IMG/VR virus record: IMGVR_UViG_3300022839_000006 | Coordinates: 1 to 64,000 of that record | Reading direction: 5' to 3' (one strand) | Length of the DNA: 64,000 nt | Shown: positions 11,460 through 46,450 of the stretch, piece by piece | How the letters are laid out: each line of letters starts with the position of its first letter | Numbering within the stretch: the stretch's first letter is position 1 | Program-made: the position numbers and the translations under genes | Notes under the pieces: model-generated | Database searches by the model: none | The model's input: only the letters and a program-made list of their open reading frames with translations | What the model was told of the DNA's origin: nothing

Positions 11460-12677
11460 GTGAACATGAACTACGAATCGGGACTTGATGTTGCCTTGAA
11501 CCTTCTACGTTCAGAGGGACGTTACAGGACGTTTGTTGATATTGAGCGCAAAAGGGGTGCATATCCTACCGCTACGTGGTACGATATAGATGGAGAACGT
11601 CGAGACATTGTTGTGTGGTGTGGCAACGATTATCTCGGCATGGGTCAACATCCTGTAGTTTTAGAGGCAATGGCTGTTGCACTTGAGGCAACAGGAGCGG
11701 GTTCAGGCGGCACGAGAAACATATCAGGAACCACAGTATACCACGGCAGACTTGAAGCGGAACTGTCTGATTTGCATCAGACAGAGGCTGCTCTTGTATT
11801 CACCTCAGCATACAATGCCAACGATGCTACATTGTCAACGTTGCCCAAGCTCTTTCCAGGCCTCATCATATATTCCGATGCGCTGAATCACGCTTCGATG
11901 ATTGAGGGCATGAGACGTAATGGTGGCGCAAAGCGTATCTTTAGGCACAACGATGTTGACCATCTACGTGATCTACTTGCTGCTGACGATCCATCTGCTC
12001 CAAAGTTAATTGCATTCGAATCTATATACTCGATGGATGGTGATTTTGCACCGATAGAAAGAATATGTGATCTTGCGGATGAATTTAACGCTCTTACGTA
12101 CATTGACGAGGTACATGCTGTCGGCATGTACGGGCCACGTGGAGCAGGCGTATGTGAGCGTGACGGTCTGATGGGTAGAATTGATATTATCAACGGTACA
12201 TTGGCCAAAGCCTACGGCGTGGCAGGTGGCTACATCGCTGGATCAGCCAAGATGTGCGACGCAATACGATCTTATGCGCCAGGATTTATATTTACGTCCT
12301 CTATGCCTCCTGCCGTTGCTGCTGGGGCAGCAGCATCAGTACGTTATTTGAAAACCGCGCAACATATGCGCGACACGCACCTACTTCGTGTCAACATGTT
12401 GAAAGGACACTTTAAAAGGATTGGACTACCTTTGATTGATAACGGCAGTCACATTGTTCCTGTACATGTAGGCAACCCCATCCACTGTAAGGCATTGTCT
12501 GACATGTTACTAGAACAACATGGAATTTATGTGCAGCCTATCAACTTTCCTACGGTCCCACGTGGAACTGAGAGACTTCGGTTCACGCCTTCTCCTGTTC
12601 ACAGCATTGGCCAAATAGACCATTTGGTTCAGGCGATGGACGAACTTTGGCATAGGTGCACACTCGGCCGCTCTTAG
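11460..12677 (+). CDS. hemA: 5-aminolevulinate synthase (PLP-dependent, Shemin pathway)
   Basis: [60 protein letters not shown] (PLP lysine), [18 protein letters not shown]. Confidence 0.96.
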
Positions 12678-13097: not shown

Positions 13098-13105
13098 TAT
13101 AAATA
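13098..13105 (+). promoter_or_regulatory. T4-type late promoter
   Basis: TATAAATA about 35 nt upstream of ORF 13140. Confidence 0.65.
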
Positions 13106-13139: not shown

Positions 13140-14696
13140 GTGACAAAAGAACCTGTCGATGTTATTAACAAGGCTGTAGAGAAGATCGACGACGTCGACA
13201 AGGCCGTAAAGAAGAGAAAAACAGACAATTCAAAATTTGTAGAATTGGACCCAACCACAGCTGATGGCGGCGATCCTATTACAGAAGTGTCAATTCTTGA
13301 CGAGAGAGCCCCACTGTCTATCCAACAGCGACGTGCACGTGGAAGGACGATGAGACGGTATAAAGGGCGCATTGCAATGGCACGTAAACGCGCTGCAAAG
13401 CGTAAGGCTTCACCTGAAAAGTTAAAGACACGTGCACGTAAAAAAGCAAGAGAGATTATTAAGAATAGACTTGCAGCGGGAAAGAAATACTCAGAGATGT
13501 CCTCGTCCGAAAAAATACAACTCGATAAGAGACTTCTTAGAATATCACCCACAGCAATTAATCGGATTGCCACAAGGCAGTTGCCAACCGTTCGAAAAGC
13601 GGAAATGGAGAGACTGGCAAGGGTCCGCAGTACCGACGCATCGCCAACCACAAAAGAGAGCATTGATACGCAGTTTGACAATTTCATAAACGAAATGCGT
13701 GAGTGTCCCCCAAAGGTACATCACCGTGCATTCACTAAAGAGGGTCGGGTCAAATTTGACAGAAGATTTAAAATGTACCGTAGCAAAGAAGATAAATTGG
13801 ACGAACTGTTTGCTCAAAATTTTATTGAAGATGCTGCAGATCTGATGAACATCACAGAGAGCAAGTTGCAAAAAGACAAAGACGATCCTTGCTGGGATGG
13901 CCATGTTCAGCTTGGCACTAAAATGAAAAACGGCAAGGAGGTCCCCAACTGCGTCCCGACCGAATCTACTGATCCATATGACCGCGAACAAGGAACTGAT
14001 AGCCTTGTCAGAATATATAAGGGCGATACACCAGGTCAAAACGAAAACTATTACCAAACAGATCTCGGCTCAGATTTCACAAACCTTACAAGAGGCGATC
14101 GTGTAAGGTTTACACAACATACAATGGACGTAGTGACAGATGGTGAAAAACAGGGAACAGTTGTTGGAAGTACTGTAGAACACCTACGCGTACGCGATTC
14201 GGAAGGATTTCTATACCTTGTGCGTCACCGCGACGCACAATTAATTGAGGATTTGAATTCCATTTTTGAATCGCGTTTTAATGAGAATGTGGTAGAATAC
14301 ACCCTAATGGAAGACGATGAAGTATGTGGTGTATTTACTCAGAGCCAGATGGCCTCTTTCGAAAAGGTTGTCGACAAACTTTTTGCAAAATTTGGGATAA
14401 ACTTTGACTTTACACGACACTTCCGCGACCGGATGTCTGATATAAGAAACAACCCCTGTATCAACGTCAAAGAGCTCGCACTGATGATTAACAAAATTTA
14501 CAAAAAGAAGGTTGCAGGGGTTGACCTGTTGTCTAAACATGTGAATACTGAAGTGGTAATTAAAGACATGCAGACGGATCTTAATATGCCAATAGCAATT
14601 GAATATGATAGGTCGAGAGATGAATTGCGTGTAGTTTCAAAAACAATCATGCGCAAAAAGAACTTCCGTACACCAAATCCTGAGGTCAAAGTGTGA
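13140..14696 (+). CDS. Modular probable virion/head-associated protein
   Basis: Late promoter; very basic segment RRARGRTMRRYKG...; CWDGHVQLGTKMKNGKEVPNCVP motif typical of cyanophage-like head proteins; distinct C-terminal domain. Confidence 0.6.
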   Translation: MTKEPVDVINKAVEKIDDVDKAVKKRKTDNSKFVELDPTTADGGDPITEVSILDERAPLSIQQRRARGRTMRRYKGRIAMARKRAAKRKASPEKLKTRARKKAREIIKNRLAAGKKYSEMSSSEKIQLDKRLLRISPTAINRIATRQLPTVRKAEMERLARVRSTDASPTTKESIDTQFDNFINEMRECPPKVHHRAFTKEGRVKFDRRFKMYRSKEDKLDELFAQNFIEDAADLMNITESKLQKDKDDPCWDGHVQLGTKMKNGKEVPNCVPTESTDPYDREQGTDSLVRIYKGDTPGQNENYYQTDLGSDFTNLTRGDRVRFTQHTMDVVTDGEKQGTVVGSTVEHLRVRDSEGFLYLVRHRDAQLIEDLNSIFESRFNENVVEYTLMEDDEVCGVFTQSQMASFEKVVDKLFAKFGINFDFTRHFRDRMSDIRNNPCINVKELALMINKIYKKKVAGVDLLSKHVNTEVVIKDMQTDLNMPIAIEYDRSRDELRVVSKTIMRKKNFRTPNPEVKV

Positions 14697-15748
14697 TACG
14701 TTTCAAACAATATCTTTCTGAGAGCGCTCAAGCAGCTTCTACATTTAAAGATGCGCGAAGTATTGTATCTTATATCAAGAGCGAAAGGACCAAACAAAAT
14801 TATATTGACGCTCTGGCAGCTCTTGAAATGGCAGCAGAGCAAAAAGAGATATACAACGCAAGGTTCTCTGATCACAAATCGGCCATAACACGTGGAATAG
14901 AATATGCGTACAGGACGTTGTTCGACGAAATAAAGGCTGATGTAATCAGATCAGGCCAAGAAACACATGACCTTTGGAGCATGACATCTGCAGGCGACAT
15001 CAAGAGAATAACGAAGATATTTAATAGCATGTCCCCAAAGATTTCTACAGCAGTTGCGTTCACAGATGCTGTTTCAGGAATACACGATGGTTTCAAGATC
15101 TTAAAGGGCTACGTCAAATCGGGGAAGCCACCTGCTCAGCCGAAACCAGGACAGTTCTACAAGCCTATAGCTTCTGTAGACGCAACAAAATTAGCGTTGA
15201 AGTTTATGAGAGAAGCCTCAGGCTCGTTTTCAAAAGAGTTGAAAGTAAGTGTCACTAATCAAATGATGGGCGCGTATGAAAAAATTCTTACCATTACCGA
15301 TCCAAAAAACTTGCCAAAAGATCCTAACACTCAACAAGTTGCTAATACAATCTTTATTGTAAGAGGTACTCGTAGAGATGCTACACTAGAGCTAATAGAC
15401 GGGCACAAGGCAAGAGTAACAAAATTAATTGATGATAGTGTTGCAATGGTCGTTGATAGATTCGTTGCTAAAAACTCTTCGAAGCTTGCGCTCATACTTC
15501 AGAAAAAAGACACGCCAAAGACACACAAAATTATAAAGACAAATATAAACAACGGCATGGTAGAAAATACTATGGTGTTTGAATTTAATGACGGCAGCAG
15601 TTTTGTCATTACGAGCAGTGTGTTGTTCAAGCGGAGTACAAACGGAAAGCTCTTTTTTCAATATCCAACACGTTTCCGAGACGTGAAGATGGCTGATGGA
15701 TCAGCAATGAAAGGCCCATCTGAAGAAAAAATGATTAAAGAATTTTAG
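14693..15748 (+). CDS. Putative internal head protein
   Basis: N-terminus MIRFKQYLSE resembles the T4 capsid-targeting sequence. Confidence 0.55.
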   Translation: MIRFKQYLSESAQAASTFKDARSIVSYIKSERTKQNYIDALAALEMAAEQKEIYNARFSDHKSAITRGIEYAYRTLFDEIKADVIRSGQETHDLWSMTSAGDIKRITKIFNSMSPKISTAVAFTDAVSGIHDGFKILKGYVKSGKPPAQPKPGQFYKPIASVDATKLALKFMREASGSFSKELKVSVTNQMMGAYEKILTITDPKNLPKDPNTQQVANTIFIVRGTRRDATLELIDGHKARVTKLIDDSVAMVVDRFVAKNSSKLALILQKKDTPKTHKIIKTNINNGMVENTMVFEFNDGSSFVITSSVLFKRSTNGKLFFQYPTRFRDVKMADGSAMKGPSEEKMIKEF

Positions 15749-15772
15749 AAATACATAAAAAGGACAATCCTG

Positions 15773-16306
15773 ATGATTAGATATAAGGCATACACACAAA
15801 GAACAGTTACAGATCCAACGTCCCAGTGGAAAAATACAGCTCCTGTGAAATATGCCAGACATCTCAGTATGTTTTTTGGACAACCTGAAGAATTGACCGA
15901 AAAAAGAGCTGTGTGGTACAACAAAGACGGTTTCATAAGAATAGAAGTGTTGGACGAGTTTGTTCTACACGCCTCACCAACCCCACACCACGATTATGTG
16001 TATTGCTATGTCAATTTAAAAATTCCACACGAAATGGCTGATGACCTAGCAATGAGCAGTGAAAGCATTCTTATCGACAATCTCAAGAGTGAGCTTGGTG
16101 CACGGTGTTCAAGTCTGAGCGCAAATGCAACAACAATACAATACGTAATGGATGTCGTCGAAAAAAGAGTCGTTCCATCCAAAGCAGAGTATGAAAAAAG
16201 AATTAAGTCTATGAGTAAAATGTTCGTGGATGGTGTAAAGTTCGAACTTGATTGGTGGCCCGATAAATCAGGCGACACTGATCCTGATAACCCATATTAT
16301 AAATAA
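15773..16306 (+). CDS. Hypothetical protein, possible internal protein
   Basis: N-terminus MIRYKAY; PTPHHDYVY and ELGARC motifs resemble a bacterial family of unknown function. Confidence 0.55.
   Translation: MIRYKAYTQRTVTDPTSQWKNTAPVKYARHLSMFFGQPEELTEKRAVWYNKDGFIRIEVLDEFVLHASPTPHHDYVYCYVNLKIPHEMADDLAMSSESILIDNLKSELGARCSSLSANATTIQYVMDVVEKRVVPSKAEYEKRIKSMSKMFVDGVKFELDWWPDKSGDTDPDNPYYK
16298..16305 (+). promoter_or_regulatory. T4-type late promoter
   Basis: TATAAATA about 30 nt upstream of ORF 16337 and its RBS aagagga. Confidence 0.7.
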
Positions 16307-16336
16307 CCACAAACAACATTTAAAAAGAGGACTACA

Positions 16337-17089
16337 ATGAAAAGTTTCAAGGAATTCAACGTTACAGAGGGTCACGATCGTTACCCTGGCGATGACATGA
16401 CGCAAAAAGAACTTCGGATTGCTATTAACTCTGCAAGCAACATACTTGAAATGATCGACAACGGTGCCACAATCATGCGGTGGCAGATCAGCGCAATTGT
16501 AAAGGCATCAGACGAACTCGCATCTGTTTACACATCAATGAGTGCTGACATGGGTGATTATGACATGGGTGACGACTCTGACGAGATGGAATATGAGTAC
16601 TCCACCATGTATGGCGAAGGGTACGAGGAAGATGACATTGCGCTCGGTGGAACTATAATATACAAGCAAAACGGAATGTACAACCTTGCAAAGGCGACGA
16701 GGAAAGGTCGTGGCGTGGTTCACACGTCAACAAAAGATACAGTGCCCCTACATAACATTGTATCAACAGACCTGTCAGATTGGAATTCCTTTAAGAACAA
16801 GCCGATCAAAGAATCTACAAACGAGGCAAATAGCCCATACAGAAAAGCTGCCACTGCTTTGTGGAATGCAGCACAACCTTTTAAAGGTAGAGACCGTGAG
16901 GATCTTATGATGCATCATAAGCTTCTGCGTAGTGTAGATCCTGCCGATCACAAATCTTCTTCTGAATTCCTAAGGAATCTTGACACAGCAATGGGGGATA
17001 TTGTTAGCGACGCTGTTCATAGAAATAGCAGCAAAGCAAATTCCTTGAAATGGCACAAGGCTGCAAAAACGACGCGCATCAAGGACTGA
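16337..17089 (+). CDS. Putative internal head protein
   Basis: MKSFKEFNVTE closely resembles T4 IPI MKTFKEF; late promoter; MTQKELR...WQISAIVKASDELASVY module. Confidence 0.6.
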   Translation: MKSFKEFNVTEGHDRYPGDDMTQKELRIAINSASNILEMIDNGATIMRWQISAIVKASDELASVYTSMSADMGDYDMGDDSDEMEYEYSTMYGEGYEEDDIALGGTIIYKQNGMYNLAKATRKGRGVVHTSTKDTVPLHNIVSTDLSDWNSFKNKPIKESTNEANSPYRKAATALWNAAQPFKGRDREDLMMHHKLLRSVDPADHKSSSEFLRNLDTAMGDIVSDAVHRNSSKANSLKWHKAAKTTRIKD

Positions 17090-17099
17090 TGTGCAACAA

Positions 17100-17810
17100 A
17101 TGAAGAAGTTCAGCGAATTTCAAAAAGAATGTAAATATGGCCTCTATTTAGAGGCCATATTTCTACACGAAAAAGGTACACTGGACGAGTTTGAAATTGT
17201 AGGGAGACTAAAAAGGTACTACAATTTTATCAAAGACTTTGCCCAATACGCAAAGGTGAGCATCAAGGACGTTGCTGAACTATTAAAAAACAAGAAGGTG
17301 TTTGATTTTTTCAGCAAGATTAAATTCTCTGTGGGCAATATATTCAAGAGGGTTCAATCAGGATTCAAACACTTTCAGGATCTTAAAAAAGCAATCGCAG
17401 ATTATCTCGCATCAACGAAGGTAGTAAAGTGGACCGAAGAAAAACTCAAAGATCTTGACACATTTCTGTCTAAGCATCCTAAAACGAAAAGAATGGCAGG
17501 CATCGCAGTTGGCGCAATTCTACTATACATCTGGCTGAATATGAGTTTCACAGGCGACTTTGATTATGACTTCGATCAGTCAGCATTGCTAGATGCATTG
17601 TTAGGCAAGTTTACGTTAAGTTCTATTTTTGCAGGTCCTGAAGGTGTTAAGCTGATTTCGCTATTCGTAACAGGTACGTTGTTTAGTTTTCCGTGGCCTG
17701 GTCCACAAGCTGCACTGTTCGTAATTTCCTTGTTGTACGGCCTCGCAAAAACATACAAAGTAAGAGATGTTATGGCCAAACTACAAGTAGCGAGACGAAA
17801 CGTAGTATAA
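17100..17810 (+). CDS. Putative internal protein with C-terminal hydrophobic segments
   Basis: MKKFSEFQKE N-terminus; TM-like MAGIAVGAILLYIWL and LISLFVTG...LFVISLLYGL. Confidence 0.6.
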   Translation: MKKFSEFQKECKYGLYLEAIFLHEKGTLDEFEIVGRLKRYYNFIKDFAQYAKVSIKDVAELLKNKKVFDFFSKIKFSVGNIFKRVQSGFKHFQDLKKAIADYLASTKVVKWTEEKLKDLDTFLSKHPKTKRMAGIAVGAILLYIWLNMSFTGDFDYDFDQSALLDALLGKFTLSSIFAGPEGVKLISLFVTGTLFSFPWPGPQAALFVISLLYGLAKTYKVRDVMAKLQVARRNVV

Positions 17811-17883
17811 CAATCCTCGAAATGCGAACTAATATTTGTGATAAATAGTGGTAACGCATACACAATAACAGAGAAGGTTACAC

Positions 17884-18018
17884 ATGTCCTACAAGAATTT
17901 TAAGATTAGGCAGGAGCGGAAAAAGAGTTCTGTTATTGAAGCGGTTGAGCCTATTATTGAAGCGGTTGAGCCTATTATTGAAGCCAAAAAAAATAAAAAA
18001 ACAAAGGGAGTAGAATAA
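17884..18018 (+). CDS. 44-aa microprotein with IEAVEPI repeats (not in ORF track)
   Basis: MSYKNFKIRQERKKSSVIEAVEPIIEAVEPIIEAKKNKKTKGVE; RBS agaagg; 21-nt tandem repeat. Confidence 0.55.
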   Translation: MSYKNFKIRQERKKSSVIEAVEPIIEAVEPIIEAKKNKKTKGVE

Positions 18019-18019
18019 T

Positions 18020-18433
18020 ATGGCTAGTTGGAGTAGAGTTGACGGTCTTGCACTTACAGGTACAGGTTCCATAACAGTAGACACAAACATCGTAACGGGT
18101 ACAGGCACAGCATTCTTAACAGAAGTTGAGCTGAATAGCCTTATTACACTTGACACAAGCGTTTTCATGGTTAAAGCAATCAACAGCGACGTTGAAATAG
18201 AAGTTCTTCCTATTGCTGAAGTCGGCCTTGCGGCACAAGCTGTACTGCTTTCACAGGCACCAAAGTACTTGCCAGTGACACAGATTGACAATGTACTGTA
18301 CGTTGAAGTGGATGAGATTAGTGCTCTCACGCGTGCCGATGGCATTAAGACACCTGGTTGGACGTTGTATGAGGAATATGGAGACGGACGCAAACGCGTT
18401 GAAACTCTAGTTGCGATGAAGTCGACCACGTAA
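18020..18433 (+). CDS. Probable virion structural protein
   Basis: VTGTGTAF beta module and TPGWTLYEEY...KRVETLVAM C-terminus typical of T4-like aquatic phage virion proteins. Confidence 0.6.
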   Translation: MASWSRVDGLALTGTGSITVDTNIVTGTGTAFLTEVELNSLITLDTSVFMVKAINSDVEIEVLPIAEVGLAAQAVLLSQAPKYLPVTQIDNVLYVEVDEISALTRADGIKTPGWTLYEEYGDGRKRVETLVAMKSTT

Positions 18434-18439
18434 TACAAC

Positions 18440-18814
18440 ATGATCTTAAATGATGGAACCTTTCTAATATACGCAATGAACTGTTATGACAATCCTTCGT
18501 GTCATGACATAGCTGAGTTTGAAGAAGACCTGAAACGCTTTCAGTACCTTCGCAAGTTATTTAATCGCTACAAACAATTTGGCGAGTTGCGTGAAAGGCT
18601 TATCCTAAACCACTTGATCGTTTTGTATAACGTGTTTGGTCCAAAGACTACGGATATGTTGTTCATGAAACTCGAAGGATATCATGAACATTTAAACCCT
18701 TTTGTTGATTACTTGAACTACACCACACATCAAGTAGTATACAACGGCAAAGTAATAGACATAGAGAAGATTGAAAACAATCTTCTAATTGAAAACACGT
18801 TGCGGAGAATATAA
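18440..18814 (+). CDS. Conserved T4-like (cyanophage-type) hypothetical protein
   Basis: YDNPSC....EFEEDLKRFQYLRKLF.RY...GELRERLILNHLIVLYNVFG. Confidence 0.75.
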   Translation: MILNDGTFLIYAMNCYDNPSCHDIAEFEEDLKRFQYLRKLFNRYKQFGELRERLILNHLIVLYNVFGPKTTDMLFMKLEGYHEHLNPFVDYLNYTTHQVVYNGKVIDIEKIENNLLIENTLRRI

Positions 18815-20367: not shown

Positions 20368-20922
20368 ATGTCAATCAAACAGATAATCAAAGAAGCGATG
20401 GATAGAAATCCCCTTGCTCTTAAAGAAGCACTGGAAGCAGAACTGAACGCACGTGTCGCTGTCGTCATTGAAGCAAAAATGCAGAAAATGGAAGACGATC
20501 ATGATGACGATGATGACGATGATGATGATGATGATGATGATGACGACGATGATGATGACGATGATGATGATGACGATGATGACGACGATGACAGTATGGA
20601 CGAAGCTGTTAAGGTAATGAAGGATCTGGGCGGAAATACCAAAGCTGTTTTTGACACCGATGGCAGCATGACTCTTTTCAGTAAAGATTCGTCCGGAAAG
20701 GACATGGTAATTCTCGAGCCGAAGCAAGTGGAAATGGTACATAGTCAGCTAATGAAAAAAGACAAATCCAAGAAGGTAATAAAGGATCTGGGCGGAAACA
20801 CCAAGGCCGTTTTTGACACTGATGGCAGCATGACTCTTGTCAGCAAAGACTCGTCCGGAAAGGACATGGTAATTCTCGAGCCGAAGCAAGTGGAAATGAT
20901 ACATAGTCAGCTAATGAAATAG
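20368..20922 (+). CDS. gp67-like acidic prohead core protein with a duplicated 49-aa module
   Basis: N-terminal helix resembles T4 gp67; 30 consecutive Asp; tandem repeat of a 49-aa unit. Confidence 0.45.
   Translation: MSIKQIIKEAMDRNPLALKEALEAELNARVAVVIEAKMQKMEDDHDDDDDDDDDDDDDDDDDDDDDDDDDDDDDDSMDEAVKVMKDLGGNTKAVFDTDGSMTLFSKDSSGKDMVILEPKQVEMVHSQLMKKDKSKKVIKDLGGNTKAVFDTDGSMTLVSKDSSGKDMVILEPKQVEMIHSQLMK
20503..20592 (+). repeat. GAT/GAC trinucleotide tract encoding 30 Asp
   Basis: Read directly from the sequence. Confidence 0.95.
20611..20919 (+). repeat. Direct repeat, 2 x 147 bp (20611-20757 and 20773-20919)
   Basis: KV(M/I)KDLGGNTKAVFDTDGSMTL(F/V)SKDSSGKDMVILEPKQVEM(V/I)HSQLMK occurs twice. 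Confidence 0.95.
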
Positions 20923-45502: not shown

Positions 45503-45578
45503 ACTCAAGTAGCTGATGTGGTCTTAGCGCCGAGTTGAAGCCTCGGAGATGTCTGTTCGATTCGGACCTTGGGCCCCA
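45503..45578 (+). tRNA. tRNA-Phe(GAA) with an atypical acceptor stem
   Basis: D stem GCTG/TAGC, anticodon stem CCGAG/CTCGG with loop TTGAAGC, T arm GTCTG-TTCGATT-CGGAC, 3' CTTGGGC-C-CCA; 76 nt from 45503. Confidence 0.75.
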
Positions 45579-45621: not shown

Positions 45622-46068
45622 ATGATTGAGTATACAGTTAAAGTTAATGACACCGGAACTAAGTCTTGGTATCTCAACGGTAAGCTACACCGAGAAGACG
45701 GTCCTGCTGTTGAGTTGGTCAACGGTAATAAGTTCTGGTACCTTAACGATAAGCAACACCGAGAAGATGGTCCTGCTATTGAGTATGGCAATGGTGATAA
45801 GTGGTGGTACCTTAACGATGAGCAACACCGAGAAGATGGACCTGCTGTTGAGTACATCAATGGTTATAAGTCTTGGTACCTTAACGGTAGGCGACACCGA
45901 GAAGATGGTCCTGCTATTCAGTATAGCAATGGTAATAAGTCTTGGTACCTTAACGGTAGGGGCCTAACGGAGGCAGAACATAAAGCTGCTACTTCACCTA
46001 AGGATACTTGTAATGGTAAAGAAGTAGTAATTGATGGTATTACTTATGTATTAAAGGAGAGTAAATAA
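45622..46068 (+). CDS. HREDGPA beta-hairpin (MORN-related) repeat protein, paralog 1
   Basis: Four 22-aa units WYLN...HREDGPA.E..NG.K. Confidence 0.85.
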   Translation: MIEYTVKVNDTGTKSWYLNGKLHREDGPAVELVNGNKFWYLNDKQHREDGPAIEYGNGDKWWYLNDEQHREDGPAVEYINGYKSWYLNGRRHREDGPAIQYSNGNKSWYLNGRGLTEAEHKAATSPKDTCNGKEVVIDGITYVLKESK

Positions 46069-46069
46069 G

Positions 46070-46450
46070 ATGATTGAACATACAGTTAAAGTTTATGACA
46101 ATGGCACTAAGCAGTGTTACCTTAACGGTAAGCTACACCGAGAAGATGGCCCTGCTATTGAGTGGGCCAATGGTTCTAAGTGGTGGTACCTTAACGATGA
46201 GCAACACCGAGAAGATGGACCTGCTGTTGAGTACATCAATGGTTATAAGTCTTGGTATCTCAACGGTAAGCTACACCGAGAAGGGGGACCAGCTATTGAG
46301 CATAGCAATGGCGATAAGTATTGGTATCTTAACGGTAAGCTACTAACGGAGGCAGAACATAAAGCTGCTACTTCACCCAAGAAGAAGCCTAGTTGTAGTG
46401 GTAAAGAAGTAGTAATTGATGGTATTACTTACACCCTAAAGGAGAAGTAA
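46070..46450 (+). CDS. HREDGPA repeat protein, paralog 2
   Basis: Three units; same N- and C-termini as paralog 1. Confidence 0.85.
   Translation: MIEHTVKVYDNGTKQCYLNGKLHREDGPAIEWANGSKWWYLNDEQHREDGPAVEYINGYKSWYLNGKLHREGGPAIEHSNGDKYWYLNGKLLTEAEHKAATSPKKKPSCSGKEVVIDGITYTLKEK

Follow-up and report, generated by a model that had tools for sequence, protein, structure and literature searches.

A five-gene array with T4-like putative capsid-targeting leaders, a candidate cassette of head-packaged proteins in an uncultured T4-like phage

In an infected cell, the phage T4 products that take effect first are the proteins packaged in the head, one of which, Alt, reprograms the host RNA polymerase. Here we describe an array of five consecutive open reading frames (ORF1 to ORF5) in an uncultured T4-like phage, whose N-termini resemble the leaders of the T4 internal proteins (IPs). 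The DNA analysed, called the window in the following, comprises bases 1–64000 of a complete virus record of 208,230 bp (IMG/VR record IMGVR_UViG_3300022839_000006). Passages of PMC9026906 summarise the finding that the first ten residues of T4 IPIII suffice for packaging (Mullaney and Black 1996); they assign targeting to residues 4 and 7 of the leader and processing to residues 8 and 10, state that Asp at position 10 stops cleavage but not targeting, and give propeptide lengths from 7 amino acids (aa) in Alt to 19 aa. The same passages describe Alt as a packaged and injected ADP-ribosyltransferase, the short N-terminal propeptide of which is removed by the protease gp21. For the T-even phages, parts of PMC3012670 and PMC12373910 refer to hyperplastic IP loci, where a fixed position is filled with different leader-tagged genes in each phage (Repoila et al. 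1994), and state that IPs 1–3 all inhibit GmrSD-type restriction of hydroxymethylcytosine-containing DNA.

We read the five genes as a variable-region cassette of late-expressed proteins, each carrying a T4-type capsid targeting sequence (CTS) at its extreme N-terminus, and put the probability of this reading at about 0.68. The ORFs lie head to tail on the plus strand between positions 14693 and 18018, and their N-termini (Table 1) are those that a first-pass annotation of the window had given. That annotation had also held their bodies to be unrelated to each other, which an all-against-all BLASTP comparison bears out, and the T4 starts that it quoted agree with NC_000866, where ipII and ipIII begin with MKTYQEFIAE and ipI with MKTFKEF; the first I-x-E of ipI is located at residues 17–19. 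All five ORFs are preceded by ribosome-binding sites. The GTG start of ORF1 overlaps the stop codon of the upstream 518-aa gene (GTGA), an arrangement of translational coupling, and is ATG in a 93%-identical relative. For ORF4 an in-frame GTG at 17091 would lengthen the protein by three residues; because this codon reads GCG in a 96%-identical relative, we regard the ATG at 17100 as the conserved start. Translations were made with genetic code table 11, and the whole-genome gene call yielded 266 genes.

Compared position by position with the T4 leader, ORF1 shows a complete match to both the targeting (F4, Y7) and the processing residues (L8, E10). ORF3 has F4 and F7, with its first seven residues resembling IPI, and a V9-T-E11 site that comes one residue late. 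In ORF4 F4 and F7 are present together with E10, but position 8 is Gln, so that the targeting half fits and the processing half is weak. Aromatic residues at both 4 and 7, counted from Met1, are found in ORF1 to ORF4 and not strictly in ORF5. With expected counts derived from internal positions, the T4-derived pattern M..[FY]..[FY][LIV].E occurs twice among the 266 genes against 0.054 expected (P = 0.0014), and aromatics at both 4 and 7 occur in eight genes against 1.96 expected (P = 0.001), four of the eight being consecutive in the array. By simulation, a run of five consecutive genes among the nine tagged ones has P = 4e-6. Leader codons of ORF1 homologues vary by synonymous and conservative changes (TTC/TTT, TAT/TAC, CTT/ATT/ATA, GAG/GAA) while the residues stay fixed, and we therefore conclude that the peptide itself is under selection; across the families of ORF2, ORF3 and ORF4 the leader is likewise conserved at the protein level. 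The AlphaFold2 (AF2) model of ORF2 leaves leader residues 1–12 disordered, as expected of a tag.

Table 1. Positions of the five ORFs, the promoter motifs and the flanking genes in the window.
Feature	Position	Strand	Remarks
T4-type late-promoter motif TATAAATA	13098..13105	+	34 nt upstream of the operon-heading 518-aa gene
518-aa basic protein (phrog_23027)	13140..14696	+	phiM12 gp159 homologue; first gene of the probable late operon; without leader
ORF1	14693..15748	+	351 aa, pI 9.7, MIRFKQYLSE
ORF2	15773..16306	+	177 aa, MIRYKAYTQR
Second TATAAATA motif	16298..16305	+	31 nt upstream of ORF3; overlaps the ORF2 stop codon
ORF3	16337..17089	+	250 aa, MKSFKEFNVTE
ORF4	17100..17810	+	236 aa, pI 9.6, MKKFSEFQKE
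Inverted repeat	17133..17162		perfect, 13 bp, 4-nt loop; 33 nt into ORF4
GATAAATA motif	17840..17847	+	differs from the late-promoter consensus at one position; 36 nt upstream of ORF5
ORF5	17884..18018	+	44 aa, basic, MSYKNFKIRQE
137-aa acidic protein	18020..18433	+	tail-fibre-like N-terminal motif; conserved downstream of the arrays in relatives
DUF7207 gene	18440-18814		with the 137-aa gene marks the 3' edge of the variable region

The genes had been called late in the first-pass annotation, and this agrees with their position behind late-promoter motifs, identified as matches to the consensus. The motif at 13098 precedes the 518-aa gene, which leads into ORF1 and ORF2, that at 16298 precedes ORF3 and ORF4, and that at 17840 precedes ORF5. 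Relatives retain the motif before the homologous large gene (L008 at 7131, L013 at 6665), and the one at 16298 is conserved in a close relative (L002 at 9605); the variant GATAAATA is also carried by the prohead protease gene of the phage. Many structural genes have TATAAATA 21–42 nt upstream, and the core ATAAATA is found 15–50 nt upstream of the capsid, scaffold and protease genes. Within the same distance it precedes six of the nine leader genes, the remaining three lying downstream in the same operons, versus 15 of 211 other non-structural genes (Fisher P = 2.6e-5). The late-promoter consensus was found upstream of every transcription unit with a leader gene.

We assigned the phage to the T4 superfamily by its protease, capsid, scaffold, portal and replication genes. 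It encodes a Peptidase_S77 prohead protease together with a capsid protein, a scaffold and a portal, and in addition a gp41-type helicase, a gp61-type primase, a ribonucleotide reductase and a DNA ligase. Its capsid protein is 63–65% identical to those of the Sinorhizobium phages phiN3 and phiM12, the Methylophilales phage Melnitz, the Stenotrophomonas phage DLP6 and marine cyanomyoviruses, and a megablast search gave no DNA-level match of the region to deposited phages. The protease (G000 85725-86486) aligns with T4 gp21 (PDB 5JBL, E = 1e-21) and has His and Ser at two positions where the 5JBL chain has Ala; the two residues probably form the catalytic pair, which would be mutated in the crystallised inactive variant. 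The capsid protein retains L-N-E/S around residue 58, about where T4 gp23 is cleaved at L-T-E/A (the slash marks the cut in T4 and the corresponding place here). Both the gp21-type protease and the gp22-type scaffold core that the leader calls for are therefore encoded in the same phage.

By analogy with IPI–III and Alt of T4 we propose the following course. The motifs at 13098, 16298 and 17840 (TATAAATA and GATAAATA) would serve as starts of late transcription, and the proteins would therefore be made alongside those of the head genes. The leader, by way of its aromatics at positions 4 and 7, would bind the assembling scaffold core, and the protein would thus become enclosed in the prohead. 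There a gp21-type protease would cut after the Glu of an (I/L/V)-x-E site, freeing the mature protein, which would leave the head with the DNA at infection and might then take up its role in the host.

Four further genes of the genome carry the leader, namely g135, g204, g214 and g224. The first (MKSFKKLIAE) sits between the portal and protease genes, and in the same place phiM12 has gp058, which starts with MKSFKQLVET. The product of g204 (MTKNFKSFLGE; G000 163562-167281 on the minus strand, locus L006:163-3882, outside the window) comprises 1239 aa and contains a PARP-type ADP-ribosyltransferase domain (PF00644) at residues 951–1069 that scores above the Pfam cut-off; a GATAAATA motif lies 38 nt upstream, and the protein, a functional counterpart of T4 Alt, is likely a packaged, Alt-like enzyme. 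A perfect TATAAATA motif is located 30 nt upstream of g214 (MMSFKQHVNE). The body of g224 (MNTFKEYIVE) is 50–70% identical to proteins of about 90 aa from marine phages that are not T4-like, and since the homology starts at residue 12 and the marine homologues have a different N-terminus, the leader is a graft.

None of the five ORFs matched a family in Pfam, PHROGs, NCBIfam or PADLOC, with sub-threshold noise only for ORF4, and a tblastn search of 50,697 phage records yielded no match for ORF1 to ORF3 and a single one for ORF4, in Phage NCTB. Environmental sequences are richer in relatives. For ORF1 we found 72 metagenome homologues of about 351 aa, with F4 and E10 conserved in at least 90%. 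The homologues of ORF2 number at least 149 and for the most part begin with M[KI]xF[KR]Q[FY][IL]xES, with MRISDILFES in one abundant clade; its close relatives read I8-Q-D10, and the leader Glu is lost in the lineage of the window alone. One ORF2 homologue seemingly without leader (L015) was rejected as a gene-call artefact, as translation from a GTG that follows a good ribosome-binding site gives (M)IRYKAYIQD. The 90 homologues of ORF3 range from 149 to 437 aa, and for most of them the match covers only 28–50% of the query. Each begins with a leader, mostly of the form MK[STR]FK[EQ]L[IL]EE and typically with Ser or Thr at position 3, after which come a conserved module of some 60 residues, an acidic stretch and a part that varies; ORF3 itself has the same build, with the conserved module rich in helices and the variable part at the C-terminus. 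No Pfam domain was detected in ten long members of this family, and single-linkage clustering of the C-terminal parts told us little, as it placed nearly all of them in one group. For ORF4, IMG/VR contains 37 relatives, every one of which starts with MK[SK][FY]x[EQ][FY] (MKSFVEY, MKSYLEYSEE, MKKYSEFTAES and similar). ORF5 occurs only in this phage and its closest relative, where the ends are the same and the repeat is a different one (10 aa, three copies), and is absent from more distant relatives.

The AF2 model of ORF1 (predicted local distance difference test score, pLDDT, 87) consists of two domains, a helical bundle and an alpha/beta domain. The fold search gave no convincing PDB match for it (best Foldseek E = 3.6e-3 with a TM score of 0.11), and the best VIA hit (Z = 7.0) was discarded as a generic helical bundle confined to residues 1–143. 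ORF2 is modelled as a compact alpha/beta protein (pLDDT 90) without a Foldseek match. VIA returned many type III secretion chaperone and YbjN entries for ORF2 at Z 4–5.5; as this is below the tool's stated noise level, we keep the likeness as a lead only. In a protein atlas ORF2 fell into unnamed clusters only. Some relatives of ORF1 and ORF2 contain additional modules. In three of them (P0052, P0171 and P0175) leader and body are separated by a Cys-rich insert, which matches the HiPIP iron-sulfur domain PF01355 at or near the Pfam cut-off of 22 bits (25.6, 23.1 and 20.0 bits, respectively), and other members of these families carry an additional C-terminal DUF6321.

The same slot is found in six longer contigs, bordered by a large g17-like or DUF5824 gene on one side and the tail-fibre-like small gene plus DUF7207 on the other, and holds three to eight leader-tagged ORFs with differing bodies. 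One slot ORF in these relatives has a weak ART-PolyVal match, a candidate ADP-ribosyltransferase. The slot is empty in phiM12, where its two flanks lie side by side.

To see how far the leader extends, we scanned IMG/VR with a strict back-translation of M-K-[ST]-F-K-[EQ]-[FY]-I-x-E. The pattern matches more than 120 contigs, while by a rough estimate well below one match would be expected under uniform composition. Among the 80 loci listed, 85 of 88 matches stand at the start of an ORF of 40 aa or more, and the tagged bodies form at least 44 clusters that are mutually unrelated at E = 1e-4. Homologues of genes of the present genome accompany 69 of the 80 loci (86%), chiefly T4 core genes (sheath, tube, portal, protease, capsid, helicase and primase), and at several loci two to four tagged genes follow each other in tandem. 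The tagged body met most often is a 106-aa family (MKSFKQFISES) that is present in 137 cyanomyovirus records (Synechococcus and Prochlorococcus); its gene in S-SCSM1 (gp030) is next to the terminase gene and is flanked by two genes with virion-protein annotations. One locus of another uncultured T4-like phage (L052 6744-7085) encodes a 113-aa ORF starting with MKTYKEFLAEA, nearly the IPIII leader of T4, as part of a three-gene tagged array beside a tail-sheath gene. Taken together, the leader occurs in cyanomyoviruses, in phiM12/Melnitz-like phages and in uncultured lineages, and the tagged families include ADP-ribosyltransferases, HiPIP-like iron-sulfur modules and, as a lead below the noise level, a secretion-chaperone-like fold. 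We tentatively suggest, with somewhat more doubt than confidence, that the short leader M-[KI]-[ST]-F-K-x-[FY]-[IL]-x-E is a capsid-delivery address whose use spans the T4 superfamily and reaches far past the T-even coliphages, and that it tags dozens of unrelated families. A literature search found no description of these leaders outside the T-evens, which cannot prove that none exists.

The best-surviving alternative is that the tagged proteins are targeted to the prohead as components of the assembly core, like T4 gp67 and gp68, where they help to build or size the head and are afterwards degraded or expelled instead of injected. Both g135 and phiM12 gp058 carry the leader within the head-morphogenesis module, and the ORF1 and ORF2 families are conserved as structural genes are, but the gene content of the locus varies among relatives and phiM12 builds its heads without the locus. 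The very small ORF5 abounds in I/V-x-E sites, in the manner of the T4 core proteins that are cut to peptides according to passages of PMC9026906, and ORF3 has an acidic scaffold-like stretch with a weak BLAST match to the scaffold (E = 0.019), whereas the bodies of ORF2 and g224 are compact folded domains without a pattern of internal cleavage sites. A leader on enzymatic cargo (the PARP-type and ART-PolyVal ADP-ribosyltransferases), moreover, is sensible only if the cargo is delivered. We consider this alternative unlikely for the array.

Less probable still, and by a clear step, is that the leader serves another use, such as recognition by a phage chaperone, protease-independent localisation or stability, on proteins that are ordinary intracellular products of late or middle expression. 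ORF4 looks membrane-associated, ORF2 misses the cleavage Glu, the array is placed among replication genes, and T4 61.1 has the same start with no known association with the head. Such a use would, however, have to account for the residue-for-residue match to the T4 targeting (4, 7) and cleavage (8, 10) positions, for a leader that is found mainly in loci with T4 core genes (69 of the 80 listed), on a gene between portal and protease (g135) and on an Alt-like enzyme (g204), and for its tie to late-promoter motifs. A resemblance by chance, or one caused by A-rich codons after the start that favour translation initiation, is very improbable and effectively refuted, because although a second-codon Lys (AAA/AAG) is common in highly expressed genes and short motifs do recur by chance, the enrichment is at least 40-fold over the internal-position expectation, the run of five has the low P value given above, the residues are kept through synonymous and conservative codon changes, and in a set of 60 sequences the conservation of F4 and E10 is 90% or higher.

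Several observations weigh against a cassette of packaged and injected proteins. ORF2 retains Y4 and Y7 but has T8 and R10, so that the targeting half fits and there is no cleavage Glu, and in ORF5 the aromatic pair Y3/F6 keeps its spacing and comes one residue early, followed by I8-R-Q-E11 with wrong spacing. ORF4 contains a single strong transmembrane-like segment (residues 132–151), which is unusual for a head-internal protein, and ORF2 and ORF3 are acidic or neutral as opposed to the basic IPs of T4. The ORF1 and ORF2 families are strongly conserved, with mean column identities of 52% and 65%, unlike the fast-evolving IPs of the T-evens. The closest isolates are without the four larger families (ORF1 to ORF4), and in phiM12, the nearest isolate with a published proteome, the leader is found only on the head-module gp058, which is annotated as hypothetical. 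The array is located among replication genes in the 41–61 interval, and its late promoters are consensus matches in a genome in which ATAAATA is no commoner than composition predicts. Finally, a leader-like start alone is no proof, since T4 61.1 starts with MKTFKEFIKE. This gene of 54 aa (NC_000866 18966-19130, L061) lies beside the primase gene 61 and has a full CTS-like leader, and the array occupies the same helicase-primase interval. We know of no evidence that T4 61.1 is packaged.

From these points the idea of a packaged cassette, as first put forward from the DNA letters, emerges in narrower form. It keeps the leader anatomy, the gp21-type protease, the late motifs, the unrelated bodies and the turnover of the locus, and it is weakened by the missing Glu of ORF2, the register of ORF5 and the membrane-like segment of ORF4. 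T4-like capsid-targeting N-termini had been ascribed to all five proteins; the aromatic residues at positions 4 and 7 are present in ORF1 to ORF4, ORF5 being off register. A putative site for cleavage after Glu is found in fewer of them: it is complete in ORF1 and nearly so in ORF3, where the mature forms would begin at Ser11 and Gly12, respectively, while ORF2 lacks the Glu, ORF4 has the Glu only and ORF5 has the wrong spacing. Judged by their leaders, the case for both targeting and cleavage is strongest for ORF1 and ORF3; targeting is also probable for ORF4, whose cleavage is uncertain, and for ORF2, which would stay uncleaved at the leader, and ORF5 is doubtful as a head-targeted protein. 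As overall estimates of head targeting we rate ORF1 as quite likely and ORF3 as likely, just behind it; for ORF2, in uncleaved form, the odds appear even, for ORF4 they fall a little short of even, and for ORF5 targeting is unlikely.

The repeat of ORF5 had been noted for its IEA units as a plausible protease site. At the DNA level it is a perfect tandem repeat of 21 nt in 2.5 copies at 17933-17984, encoding a 7-aa repeat that indeed creates V-I-E and I-I-E sites; because the relative has a quite different repeat, a function as protease site stays only plausible. The same tandem repeat is a break point of contigs in both salt-lake metagenome runs described below. Less survives of the proposal that each protein could be a new anti-defence factor. 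The ORF1 and ORF2 families are conserved, no library family was matched, and the models of ORF1 and ORF2 gave no convincing fold match; likeness to IPI*, IPII or IPIII was found neither by sequence in the family libraries nor by fold for the ORF1 and ORF2 models. An anti-defence role of the five proteins is no more than a possibility.

Two salt-lake metagenome runs carry the window sequence almost letter for letter, and no RNA run was found to contain it. The independent run has the same array with 15 substitutions over 4.5 kb (14000-18500), eight of which fall into 16530-16753, the acidic or variable middle of ORF3. The hairpin near the start of ORF4 is retained, with one G:U pair, only in the closest (96%) relative and not in more distant homologues. 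The 518-aa protein and the head-module g135 match some common PHROG families (phrog_4359, phrog_22379), and the former may itself be head-associated without a leader; its gene also matches some PHROG families of cyanophage proteins annotated as cytidyltransferase. Directly upstream of the cassette, at 11466-12677 (plus strand), the phage carries a 5-aminolevulinate synthase gene (TIGR01821, 644 bits against a cut-off of 339), an auxiliary gene of the haem pathway that relatives have too. Downstream, at 20368-20922 (plus strand), a protein with a poly-Asp run of about 34 residues and an internal duplication is encoded. In relatives (L008, L012, L013, L018, L021) the N-terminus of this protein, MSIKQII.E..NP..LKEAL, is seen again on several adjacent genes that differ in length, and apart from the leader it may represent another N-terminal module shared between genes. 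Two pairs of tandem paralogues (45622-46450 and G000 204637-205603) start with MIEYTVKV, MIEHTVKV or MIEATVKV, and the first pair is closely preceded by a tRNA-Phe at 45503-45578.

If the leader is read in this lineage as it is in T4, the window would encode five candidate injected proteins and the genome nine. By the same sequence rule such proteins would be recognisable in many T4-like phages of the sea, of saline waters and of cyanobacteria, so that the injected proteome of environmental T4-like phages would be readable directly from sequence. The ORF3 family, with its leader, module of about 60 aa, acidic linker and variable C-terminus, would then represent a modular adaptor-cargo system, and the leader could serve as a packaging tag for engineering T4-like phages other than those of coli. 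As the principle has been known since 1994–1996, the gain lies in the apparent reach of the tag across the T4 superfamily and in new cargo families, not in a new mechanism.

With the IP genes of T4 the array has in common an N-terminal leader of 10–19 aa with aromatics at 4 and 7 and, most clearly in ORF1, an I/L-x-E ahead of the predicted cut. Beyond the leader the bodies are unrelated in both cases, both genomes encode a gp21 protease, and the genes stand side by side, probably read through from late promoters of the upstream gene as they are in T4 (in the order e, ipIII, ipII). The mature parts show no similarity, and the proteins described here are larger (20–39 kDa versus 8–20 kDa), two of them acidic or neutral and one with a transmembrane-like segment. 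Instead of being hypervariable, two of the families are conserved in a wide range of environmental phages; the T4 host is an enterobacterium, while the array comes from a salt lake and is known from sequence alone. The giant phages phiKZ and SPN3US are said to follow a related route, in which head-internal proteins are cut after Glu by a gp21-related protease and then ejected; their ejection proteins reportedly have long propeptides with an S/A/G-x-E site instead of a 10-aa aromatic leader at Met1. Like T4 gp67 and gp68, g135 lies in the head module, between portal and protease, with the leader, whereas the five ORFs of the window lie outside that module at a locus dispensable in phiM12. With T4 Alt, g204 shares the combination of leader, late-promoter-like motif and ADP-ribosyltransferase domain; as it matches the PARP family (PF00644) and not Alt, it is an analogue and not a shown homologue. 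In organisation the locus behaves as described for the IP loci of the T-even phages. There as here, one slot is filled by different tagged genes in different relatives, with the leader as the sole shared part, although the present slot lies in the 41–61 interval of a phiM12/Melnitz/cyanophage-like lineage and holds a different set of families.

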